NCBI GenBank assembly: GCA_964036045.1
Contig: OZ038378.1
Location: forward strand, 168,578,001 to 168,642,000
Origin: Eutreptiella sp. 'Long Island Sound 2002'
Taxonomy: Eukaryota > Protista > Euglenida
Reading direction: 5' to 3'
DNA length: 64,000 nt
Each line of letters starts with the position of its first letter. Position 1 is the stretch's first letter. Below are positions 22,813 to 26,703 of the stretch, one piece after another. Made by a program: the position numbers and the translations under genes. Under the pieces are notes generated by a model. That model had not been told where the DNA came from. It was given only the letters and a program-made list of their open reading frames with translations, and did no database searches.

Positions 22813-23009
22813 GAGGAGACCGCTGTTGCATGCAGACCCTTTAGGCCACCGCGTCCCTGCTTACCTTCCAAAAGGGTGTGCATTGCACTAAAACATTGCA
22901 TCATGTGACACGCGCGCCTGCTTCGACCACTGCCGACATGGGCGTATTGATGGTATTTTCCTCAAACGGAAATAGTTTCTTCATGTTTTTCAAGAACTAG
23001 GATTCCCAA

Positions 23010-23717
23010 GGGGCGTACCGTGCGCTGTGCGCGCGCTGTGCACGCACTGTGCGAAAAGTAGGCCATTCTCCACCACCGGTAGGCAGTTTTTTGGGTAGGG
23101 TACTATTGCCATTGTGTATCCTTGTAGCATCAACCCTCCCCCTTCTTGCGTGTATGTACCTTTGCAAACGGGCACCCTGAGGCCGGTATATGGTGATACA
23201 TTCTTACGGTGTCTGCCGCGGGGCATCATCTTTTGCTCTCATTTCTCAGACCCTCTATTGCATTCACCATGGACTTTAATGTTGGAGATAGGGTGTTCTA
23301 CACTCGCTCTAATGGGGTGCGAGTTCCTGCCACAATGGTGGGGTTTGCGCCCGACGGATTAGTCCACTTGGAGTATTTCCGAGACGCGGTGAAGGTGGTG
23401 AATCGGCAGTGCAAAGTTAAGTCCATCTCCTTTGCCATCTCGAGTGCCGACTCACCGCCCCCTCATTTCCCTTATCTTGTGACCCATTTCACTGATGCCA
23501 TGCCAATCAGTTCTATTGGTGGTGCTCTTTCCAATATACTATTCAACCCCAAGTATGCGGGTTGTGTGTGGAAGATTACCGTGGCCGTGGACCACTTGGG
23601 TAACATTGTGTAGATATGCCTTGTCCTACCCGGCACTAGTGCCGATGTTAAGATATGGGACACCGTAATAATTGGCGCTGTGCGCGCGCTGTGCGCGCAC
23701 TGTGCGAAAACGCCCCC
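23010..23717 (+). mobile_element. Non-autonomous internal-deletion derivative of the element at 24119-25908
   Basis: Near-identical to both ends of 24119-25908, with two internal deletions (junction microhomologies CCCT and ACA). Termini GGGGCGT / ACGCCCCC. TSD ambiguous because of the C run. Confidence 0.9.
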
Positions 23718-24369
23718 CCCAAACAATCAAGTGGAATTTGGGGGTCATGAAGGGGGTGCACACCTTTGCGCACGCATGCCCTACCAAGTCGGCATCTTGT
23801 GGTGCTCTACCTCCTTCCTTGAACTACTTATGGGCATTTTTATTCATCTTGAACCCATCTCGTCCCTTGCCCCACTGTTGAGAATTCAAGTAGTGGTGCA
23901 GCTGCAAGATTGAGCACTTTATTATTATGGTGCCACTGCATCCAATTTGTTACTCCACCAGAGCAATGAGGGCATGTGTGCACTTGTTGTGTTGCAGCAC
24001 ACATGTGCTCCCGGTCAATGAATGGTACCAGCAAGAATTCCTTGGGAGCACAAAGAATCAATCTGAAATGAAGTGTTGCTTGGTAACGAGCGAAGACGAA
24101 CCAGGGATGGATATAATAGGGGGCGTACCGTGCGCTGTGCGAAAAGTAGGCCATTCTCCACCACCGGTAGGCAATTTTTTGGGTGTAGGATTGCCGCAGG
24201 GTACTATTGCCATTGTGTATCCTTGTAGCATCAACCCTCCCCCTTCTTGCGTGTATGTACCTTTGCAAACGGGCACCCTGAGGCCCGTATATGGTGATAC
24301 ATTCTTACGGTGTCTGCCGCGGGGCATCATCTTTTGCTCTCATTTCTCAGACCCTCTATTGCATTCACC

Positions 24370-24720
24370 ATGGACTTTAATGTTGGAGATAGGGTGTTCT
24401 ACACTCGCTCTAATGGGGTGCGAGTTCCTGCCACGGTGGTGGGGTTTGCGCCCGACGGATTAGTCCAGAGACGCGGTGAAGATGGTGAATCGGCAGTGCA
24501 AAGTTGAGTTCATCTCCTTTGCCATCTCGAGTGCCGACTCACCGCCCCCTTGCTCACACAGCCCTTCGCCGCCGCCTGACGATCGGGGAAGGGCTCCATC
24601 AAAATCAGCAACTCCACCACCCCGTGCAAAGCCGCCCACCCCCAAGACTACACAACGGTCTCGGGAGGCTAGCAAGTAGCTCGCTGCCGCCGTGAAGACC
24701 TTGAAGGGTGGGCTGAGGTC
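24370..24720 (+). pseudogene. Disrupted N-terminal part of the transposase (Tudor-like barrel + Pro-rich linker)
   Basis: MDFNVGDRVFYTRSNGVRVPATVVGFAPDGLV..., then a 14-nt deletion relative to the copy at 23270, TAG at 24677-24679 and a 1-nt frame offset before 24721. Confidence 0.7.
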
Positions 24721-25686
24721 ATGGGGTGTGATGCCGTCACACCGGAAGAGTGGTACCAGAAATATGGGCATGACACCTATTTAACTCGCGAAGAGATGTT
24801 CATATTTTTGGTAAAGTTGAAGACCAACCCCACCCATGACACAACCCCAAGAATGGTGGGTAAGCCAAAGGCAAGCCCCCAAGCAATTGATCGCATTGTA
24901 TGTAAGGTCCGGCGGTACCTGAACTTGGCGGTTGATGAGGTGCATTGGTCGGACCGTTTGAATAGGTTCAATCATAACCCTCATTTCCCGTATCTTGTGA
25001 CCCATTTCACTGATGCCATGCCAATCAGTTCTATTGGTGGTGCTCTTTCCAATATACTATTCAACCCCAAGTATGCGGGTTGTGTGTGGAAGATTACTGT
25101 GGCCGTGGACCACTTGGGTAACATTGTGTGGATATGCCCTATCCTACCCGGCACTAGTGCCGATGTTAAGATATGGGACAAGTATGGGCCGCAACGTACC
25201 AAGGGTTGTTTCATGGAGTTTGAGGTTGGTGTGCATGATGGAGCATACAAGGGGCGATTACATTCACATGTCCCTTTCATTGGTCGAAAGACTTTGACCA
25301 TGCGGCAGAAAACATATAATGATGTGCATGGGTATTATAAGGCACGGGTGGAACACTTGTTTGCCCACCTTTGGTCTTGGAGGGTAGTGCGTGACATTTG
25401 GCTGGGGTCCCATCAAGACTTGCATGCCAACACACGCATACTTCTGCACTTTTCACAATTCATGTTGCGAAGACAGAAAAGGTATCAGCCTTATGGCCCA
25501 TGGGAGCACATTCCTTCTTCCATTTGGACTGAGGAAGAGGCCCGTGCGGTTGATGAGGAAGAGGAGGATACTTTCCTTTGCCAAGTTTGTGGCAAAAGGG
25601 ACACATCGGAATGCTCCACGTGTGATCTTTACTTGTGTAGAGGTTGCATGGGTGAACATACTTGCGATATTGATGTTCCCGAGTAG
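24721..25686 (+). CDS. DDE transposase (DDE_Tnp_4-like) with HTH and C-terminal Cys-rich finger
   Basis: HTH-like LTREEMFIFLVKLKTNP...IDRIVCKVRRYL. Catalytic-type motifs HFTDAMP (D at 25012), FNPKY..VWK, GTSAD, VHDGAYKG (D at 25237) and YN..H...ARVEHLF (E at 25351). C-terminal CQVC...CSTCDLYLCRGCMGEHTC. Confidence 0.9.
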   Translation: MGCDAVTPEEWYQKYGHDTYLTREEMFIFLVKLKTNPTHDTTPRMVGKPKASPQAIDRIVCKVRRYLNLAVDEVHWSDRLNRFNHNPHFPYLVTHFTDAMPISSIGGALSNILFNPKYAGCVWKITVAVDHLGNIVWICPILPGTSADVKIWDKYGPQRTKGCFMEFEVGVHDGAYKGRLHSHVPFIGRKTLTMRQKTYNDVHGYYKARVEHLFAHLWSWRVVRDIWLGSHQDLHANTRILLHFSQFMLRRQKRYQPYGPWEHIPSSIWTEEEARAVDEEEEDTFLCQVCGKRDTSECSTCDLYLCRGCMGEHTCDIDVPE

Positions 25687-25965
25687 CCCCTAATATATTT
25701 TTAGGTGTTCTTTAACACCCGCAAGACAATTTTATTGTCTACATTGCATTGTTTTGGACATTGGATAATTCTGAGAACACGACACGTTTGAATTTCGGAG
25801 TTTTGAATTGCTCATGCATGCTTCTAGAGGTGGCAGGTTTTCAGGGCTGTTACTGGGGTAAACACCGTAATAATTGGCGCTGTGCGCACGCTGTGCGAAA
25901 ACGCCCCCATAGTGATCGAATTATTTTGGTGGGCTTGGGGTGCGAGGGGCTCTGAGGGGCCTGAG

Positions 25966-26220
25966 ATGACGAAATGATGATGCTAAAACTCCTTTGTCCC
26001 TCTTATGGTACATGGTAAATTTTGGTGCCGAAGCCACCGAAATTTTTTTCTGGGGAGCCAAAATGGTCCAAAACTCCAAAACATTTTCTTTCAAAAAAAA
26101 GGTCAAATTGATCAGCATAATGTGCCGAACGCAAAGAGGTATGTGTGGGGGCCAAAAAAAAACTTTGTTCTTCAAGGGCCAAAATTGGCCAGCGCAATTT
26201 CATCATCGTCATTTCGTCAT
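25966..26220. mobile_element. MITE-like element, 255 bp
   Basis: Left ATGACGAAATGATGATG is the reverse complement of right CATCGTCATTTCGTCAT at 16/17. AT-rich non-coding interior. No TSD seen. Confidence 0.6.
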
Positions 26221-26703
26221 TGCGGGGGGTGGGGGGGGGGGGCATCCTACTATGTCCCACTACATCCCACTATATCCATCCCTGGGATAAACTTCAACCC
26301 AGCACACATGAAGCACCATGTAATTTGGCAAGTTCCATATTCTGTTGTTGAGCCTTTGCTCGCTTGCGTCGCATGGTGTTGTGGAATGAATTGTCTCATC
26401 GTGATGTGGCATCCTCTTGAGTGATCATTTTGTGTCCGCATATGCATCCCAGACAAGGGAAGCCACATAATGTGGTCCTCCGACACCAATCCACAGATCC
26501 GCGCAACATTGCATCGGAGCATTTTTGTTTTCGATCATATCCGCTTTTTTTATGTTTTGCCGTAGGTCATTTGTCTCCTCTTTCGGATGAAATAGGGTAG
26601 GATGGCAAAGAAATTGATTCTCTAAACAGCAGCCCTAATGGGCATTTGATCGCACTTTGGGGACCCGTTTGCTGTCCAGTCTTCGCTGCGCAAACACCGT
26701 GCC

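Follow-up and report, generated by a model that had tools for sequence, protein, structure and literature searches.

Classic Harbinger systems need two proteins, including a Myb-like ORF1 protein, and the target-site duplication (TSD) of the PIF/Harbinger elements is TWA in the classic type and ANT in Pangu. The ISL2EU elements make a 2-bp TSD, have THAP or YqaJ partners, and carry their accessory domains fused or adjacent to the transposase. The mobile elements known to carry reader domains are mainly retrotransposons. In the chromoviruses, a small Royal-family-type barrel sits on the integrating enzyme, and targeting by this chromodomain has been experimentally shown. The LTR retrotransposon Gypsy-10_Ec32, from Ectocarpus, carries a C-terminal Tudor domain; its authors presented it in 2025 as the first report of such a domain in any transposable element (PMC12477816). 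A survey of chromatin proteins described Chromo and PHD fusions with DNA transposons, such as the sponge hAT-Chromo, and contains no Harbinger-Tudor case (doi 10.1101/2021.11.30.470311). A preliminary description of the present locus was aware of no such architecture in this group; our literature search likewise found no description of a Harbinger element with a Tudor domain.

The window analysed here is a stretch of 64,000 nucleotides from Eutreptiella sp. 'Long Island Sound 2002', and sits on a chromosome of about 200 Mb in a 2.28-Gb assembly. The element at 24119-25908 is a real but defective copy of a DNA transposon family. The family is an undescribed, PIF/Harbinger-like one with an unusual accessory Tudor-like barrel. 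It resembles PIF/Harbinger in the DDE_Tnp_4 core with its D/D/E motifs, the sub-threshold HTH_Tnp_4-like stretch ahead of this core, the 3-bp TSD in a weakly palindromic target, and the many short non-autonomous derivatives. It differs in being single-gene, without a Myb/SANT helper ORF; in a TSD that is neither TWA nor ANT; in the 8-bp inverted tip with direct subterminal repeats; and in a gene whose product has a Tudor-like barrel at the N-terminus and a B-box-like finger at the C-terminus, and which contains at least one predicted intron. The ISL2EU elements share a distantly related DDE core and the habit of fusing or adjoining accessory domains; however, the TSD of the window family is 3 bp long, and neither THAP nor YqaJ was seen. 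Like Gypsy-10_Ec32, the family is a mobile element carrying a Tudor-type barrel. Gypsy-10_Ec32 is a retrotransposon with its domain at the integrase C-terminus, where it is recognised as a Tudor domain; whereas the window family is a DNA transposon with an N-terminal barrel, recognisable by fold only. The chromoviruses and other fusions of readers with transposable elements offer an analogy for chromatin tethering, although the barrel-less sisters of the window family share its large-scale distribution.

The window copy, its ends and its family

The features of the window copy and of a neighbouring copy are as follows (+, forward strand).

23009-23725, +: second copy of the family, internally deleted, with the barrel frame intact (23269-23463)
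24116-24118, no strand: left TSD copy, ATA (a 3-bp TSD is found in 35 of 40 family copies)
24119-24126, +: 5' terminal inverted repeat GGGGGCGT, read from the sequence
24132-24146, +: subterminal motif GCTGTGCGAAAA, a direct (not inverted) repeat of one near the 3' end
24370-24468, +: intact part of the Tudor-like barrel module, residues 1-33
24467-24538, +: remaining barrel, residues 38-61, put out of frame by a 14-bp deletion
24539-24679, +: Pro/Ser/Arg-rich linker, stopped by TAG at 24677-24679
24680-24720, +: remnant of the exon-1 tail and internal-deletion junction, by comparison with the copies L025, L057, and L002
24721-25686, +: open frame of 321 codons covering the C-terminal two thirds of the transposase of the family, with 95% identity to L002
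24787-24840, +: HTH_Tnp_4-like stretch, sub-threshold (Pfam E 0.079)
25012-25014, 25237-25239, and 25351-25353, +: catalytic D, D, and E codons
25090-25398, +: DDE_Tnp_4 match (Pfam)
25579-25665, +: B-box-like C-terminal finger with seven Cys and one His, retained in every subfamily
25877-25900, +: 3' subterminal copies of the GCTGTGCG motif, direct orientation
25901-25908, +: 3' terminal inverted repeat ACGCCCCC, read from the sequence
25909-25911, no strand: right TSD copy, ATA

The 8-bp inverted ends and the ATA duplication proposed earlier were both read directly. The inverted match of the tips stops after 8 bp, and ATA is found on both flanks. Three flanking bases, variable in sequence and A/T-rich, are duplicated in 35 of 40 paired ends of other copies; therefore, the ends and the TSD are not a chance match. 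The target logo of 35 rebuilt empty sites is a loose palindrome (C-WWW-G), with C at -1 in 18 sites and G after the TSD in 27. TAA and TTA together account for 5 of these 35 TSDs, and ANT for another 5/35. The GCTGTGCGAAAA motif has the same orientation at both ends of the element, inside the tips. 'Polar' ends were observed in both the window type and the L026-L030 subfamily, with a short G-rich inverted tip and with subterminal GC(T/A)GTGCG repeats that keep one orientation at the two ends. The transposase may bind at these direct subterminal repeats.

The window element is itself nested in a small inverted-repeat structure (24101-24118 with 25909-26285): CCAGGGATGGATATA lies left of the element, and its reverse complement at 26266-26285 matches at 90% over 20 nt. 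This host structure looks like a MITE-like element of about 390 bp, into which the transposon would have inserted.

The coding part of the window copy is decayed. Alignment with the neighbour at 23009-23725 showed that 14 bp are deleted after ...FAPDGLV, with loss of the HLEYF strand and a frame shift. The TAG that ends the linker is CAG in the copy L063. An internal deletion took what followed of exon 1 together with the putative intron and the first part of exon 2. Having lost these parts, including most of the exon-1 tail, the window copy is non-autonomous. The preliminary description had seen an intact 321-aa ORF with HTH, DDE, and Cys-finger parts. The frame is indeed open, with a DDE_Tnp_4 match above the cut-off; however, its HTH match is below threshold, and its start is an internal Met of the family protein. 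The match of this ORF to a B-box-type finger is also sub-threshold in Pfam, and HTH_Tnp_4 clusters were found among the language-model look-alikes of the HTH-like stretch. The other ORFs in the element are short (at most 106 aa) and overlap the transposase gene on either strand. The module said to precede the ORF is genuine across the family, but is not fused to it in the window copy; the Pro-rich linker is present, but lies in a different frame and ends at its TAG. The module peptide that was quoted is not encoded by the window element. It blends the window copy with its neighbour, and its 'HLEYF' part stems from the short copy (23269-23463).

The family is large. A transposase query of the genome gave 14,774 first-look candidates, and a 23-nt pattern of the 5' end, searched with at most one mismatch, had 2,686 genome matches versus 1 for the control. 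The 5' end of the L026 type, a subfamily that lacks the barrel, had 2,197 genome matches. Many short non-autonomous derivatives are present. Many barrel copies are 100% identical in protein, so the amplification is recent. The relatives outside the Eutreptiella genome come from ENA assemblies only. A 595-codon frame at L063:1876-3663 (minus strand) runs from the barrel and linker into retrotransposon Gag-like sequence with a CCHC knuckle, and is apparently a chimera made by insertion or capture.

Gene structure and transposase core

The layout of the gene was taken from the longest copies (L025 and L057), with the exons analysed separately by reference. Exon 1 has 188 codons, which comprise the barrel, a basic Pro/Ser/Arg linker, and a Trp-rich helical stretch, and ends in ...HKYRY. 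It is followed by a 90-nt segment that starts with GT and ends with T12AG; when this segment is removed, exon 1 is in frame with exon 2 (L057). Exon 2 contains, in order, a conserved region, the HTH-like stretch, the DDE core, and the finger. Exon 1 also ends in 'YRY/G' in the L026 subfamily, an argument for a genuine splice donor. The full gene probably has at least two exons, with the barrel joined to the DDE core through a predicted 90-nt intron. None of the 180 proteins examined spans the exon junction. The intron positions differ among the subfamilies. In a barrel-bearing subfamily with a DDE core about 55% identical to that of the window's subfamily, there is a frame switch inside the exon-1 tail (L069:4600-4760), where the window's subfamily (L025) is continuous; in L026, a further frame switch follows the linker.

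In the copy L002, a single frame of 469 codons runs without interruption from barrel to finger. L002 was rejected as the full gene, as comparison shows that it derives from an in-frame internal deletion. Such deletion derivatives were also set aside as evidence of selection: about 5 of 12 keep the barrel and the DDE core in frame, indistinguishable from the one third expected by chance. A fold of the 469-aa protein made without an alignment had a pLDDT of 32 and was discarded.

The enzyme was described earlier as of the DDE_Tnp_4 type, and this assignment holds. The Pfam scores are 29.3 bits for L002 and 28.2 bits for the window ORF, above the curated cut-off of 24.8 bits. The catalytic residues D246, D321, and E359 (L002 numbering) lie in the Harbinger-type motifs FTD, HDGAY, and RVEH, and the TSD is 3 bp long. 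No part of the gene had a Pfam match to Myb/SANT, and no second ORF encoding such a helper was found. The exon-1 tail (L025:929-1168) has regularly spaced Trp residues, which recall Myb/SANT spacing, with 35-48% identity to other subfamilies. A fused Myb/SANT domain in this tail was considered and rejected, as Pfam gave no match.

Exon 1 might also act unspliced, as a separate helper of 188 aa (barrel, linker, and Trp-rich part) that would be the counterpart of the Myb-like ORF1 protein. In the unspliced DNA, exon 1 is a complete ORF with a stop, and the same 212-codon stop-to-stop frame is kept in many copies. Some relatives (such as P0003) begin their ORF downstream of the exon-1 region, and the two-protein organization of the classic Harbinger systems would fit as well. 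However, the exon-2 frame has no ATG ahead of its conserved region in the window's subfamily, one frame is restored by removing the GT...T12AG segment, and the exon-1 tail has no Myb/SANT match in Pfam. A separate helper is thus a real but doubtful possibility, and the single spliced gene is preferred.

Fold, conservation and loss of the barrel

A phmmer search of 1.84 billion representatives found 145 relatives of the barrel, with identities reaching down to about 40%; nearly all are short ORF calls. Aligning 51 of them gave an AF2 model with a pLDDT of 77.8 (about 85-89 over residues 1-50). Its strands (8-12, 18-26, 32-38, 41-48, and, after a 3-10 turn, 53-55) form a five-stranded SH3-like barrel. 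The top Foldseek matches in the PDB are almost all Tudor domains, including PHF20, PHF20L1, TDRD2, SMN, PHF1/19, and TDRD3, with E-values of 0.009 to 0.1 and target-normalised TM scores up to 0.76. The matches of the Atlas search include Tudor-knot, Agenet, and SMN. In VIA-align, PWWP, Tudor, Agenet, and chromo-barrel domains had Z scores of 6-8; the same range was obtained for NusG KOW, L21e, NdhS, and other SH3-like barrels, and none of these stands out. The Tudor-type models of Pfam (TUDOR, SMN_Tudor, Agenet, PWWP, and Chromo) matched none of the 51 family members, and the sole Pfam match of the barrel was SH3_12, below threshold (E ~0.01). The Tudor/SH3-like barrel that had been proposed from the sequence pattern stands as a predicted fold, based on the AF2 model and the Foldseek matches.

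Searches of PDB-chain sequences with the barrel and with the family profile gave chance matches only (PCNA, proteasome alpha subunits, and TM0723). One match of the barrel search, P0166 (2,025 aa), is a bacterial S-layer/InlB-repeat protein and was rejected as spurious. P0178 (129 aa), with two tandem repeats that begin FNVGDRVNYT, gave sub-threshold matches to several SH3/Tudor-like models in Pfam, and could be related to the barrel without belonging to a transposon.

Positions F10, Y11, T12, V23, and N45 are near-invariant, and Y36, position 37, and F55 are mostly aromatic. Canonical Tudor cages draw two of their four residues from the beginning of strand 2 and from the turn between strands 3 and 4. 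The conserved aromatics of the barrel family lie at the end of strand 1 (F10/Y11), at the end of strand 3 (Y36/position 37), and at F55; residues R18, V19, and P20, where strand 2 begins, are not aromatic, and neither are Q38, D39, and G40 of the 3-4 turn. Conserved aromatics thus occupy two of the four usual cage regions, and any full aromatic cage is putative. The barrel is acidic (pI 5.6); the adjoining linker is very basic (pI 11.8).

The barrel is encoded in exon 1 in two subfamilies with DDE cores about 55% identical. In the more distant one, it lies upstream of the DDE core in L065 (Eutreptiella genome) and in L069 and L070 (ENA contigs). The dN/dS of the barrel is 0.19-0.28 between the two subfamilies, at a near-saturated dS of 1.4-1.7, and 0.77 between close copies. 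These values indicate purifying selection on the barrel in the active lineages.

Two subfamilies, the L026 and L020 types, have no barrel. Their exon 1 begins just before the SPPP linker, with differing deletion boundaries. Three copies of each type were compared, and the L020 copies are near-identical. In the DDE tree, which is a within-family tree rooted with a long-branch outgroup, the window's subfamily has the L020 type as its sister, with the 55% barrel-bearing subfamily in basal position. The L026 and L020 types are thereby placed between barrel-bearing lineages. Given this placement and the differing deletion boundaries, the simplest reading is that the barrel was ancestral and lost twice independently.

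Chromosomal distribution and the role of the barrel

The distribution was compared at the Mb scale on chromosome 1, using perfect-match 5' ends.

Barrel-bearing 5' ends, total 55: 0-30 Mb, 13; 30-120 Mb, 0; 120-157 Mb, 8; 157-200 Mb, 34
Barrel-less L026-type 5' ends, total 76: 0-30 Mb, 21; 30-120 Mb, 3; 120-157 Mb, 11; 157-200 Mb, 41

The two distributions do not differ from each other (KS p=0.81), and both are far from uniform (p ~1e-9). Because the barrel-less L026 type has the same distribution, the bias toward the distal arms is independent of the barrel at this scale. The barrel is an accessory, and it does not set the chromosome-scale distribution. The central 90 Mb (30-120 Mb) is nearly free of both subfamilies but does contain spliced-leader-like repeats. 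A 24-nt spliced-leader string of Euglena had 5,458 matches in the genome versus 0 for the reversed control, which marks the host as euglenid rather than human. Relative to the spliced-leader repeat, both subfamilies are more depleted in the chromosome centre (Fisher p ~1e-4), a hint of a large central compartment to which the two have no access or from which they were purged.

The best explanation is that the window element is a decayed, non-autonomous copy of a very abundant PIF/Harbinger-like family, in which the barrel is probably a dispensable accessory and not a chromosome-scale determinant. Exon 1 would encode the 60-aa Tudor-like SH3 barrel, the basic Pro/Ser-rich linker, and the Trp-rich helical stretch; exon 2 would encode the conserved helical/HTH region, the DDE core, and the B-box-like finger. 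The DDE core would cut and paste the element, and the helical and HTH parts would bind its ends. The barrel would tether the transposase to a host protein or chromatin ligand, and would tune the efficiency or the fine-scale choice of sites rather than the chromosomal region of landing.

The preliminary description had gone further, proposing that the barrel reads methyl marks and steers insertion. A reader of methyl-lysine or methyl-arginine would tether the transposase to marked nucleosomes, as in the chromoviral integrases. The best fold matches are Tudor domains that read histones or methyl-arginine (PHF20, PHF1/19, SMN, and TDRD2/3); the module is acidic and under selection, with near-invariant F10, Y11, and Y36 and a mostly aromatic position 37; and the insertions are strongly non-uniform along chromosome 1. 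However, the Pfam searches gave no Tudor, Agenet, PWWP, or chromo match, two of the usual cage regions have no conserved aromatic, and Tudor domains score in the same VIA-align range as KOW, NdhS, and other SH3-like barrels. Moreover, the L026 type is similarly numerous and has the same chromosome-scale bias without a barrel. A methyl reader of this kind is unlikely, and the existence of prolific barrel-less sisters gives no support to steering by the barrel.

The barrel might instead bind nucleic acid (the element ends, target DNA, or RNA), like KOW, some PWWP domains, and the SH3-like C-terminal domain of retroviral integrases. The top fold matches include NusG KOW, ribosomal L21e, and a PWWP that binds ssDNA, and the adjoining linker is very basic, but the barrel itself is acidic. 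The barrel-less subfamilies keep the same end style, a G-rich tip and direct GCAGTGCG-type repeats; thus, the ends can be recognised without the barrel, and this role is distinctly improbable. That the module is a captured or chance ORF fragment without function would agree with its double loss while amplification went on, but is very hard to reconcile with the low dN/dS at saturated synonymous divergence, the confident barrel model, and its retention in two subfamilies with DDE cores only about 55% identical.

The dispensable accessory thus is the preferred reading. It is a rather remote prospect that the barrel is a working methyl-mark reader that biases integration by a DNA transposase at the scale of nucleosomes or genes. 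If this were true, the family would be the first cut-and-paste element with Tudor-guided targeting, and the barrel-bearing and barrel-less sister families in one genome would form a natural experiment. Since both sister types coexist at thousands of copies in one genome, the contribution of the barrel to site choice is directly measurable; the first coarse comparison, at the Mb scale on chromosome 1, showed no difference between them. The range of architectures known in the superfamily is widened by a Harbinger-type transposase that is encoded by a single gene and combines a Tudor-like barrel with a B-box-like finger, and the family shows how a protist lineage did without a Myb helper gene.
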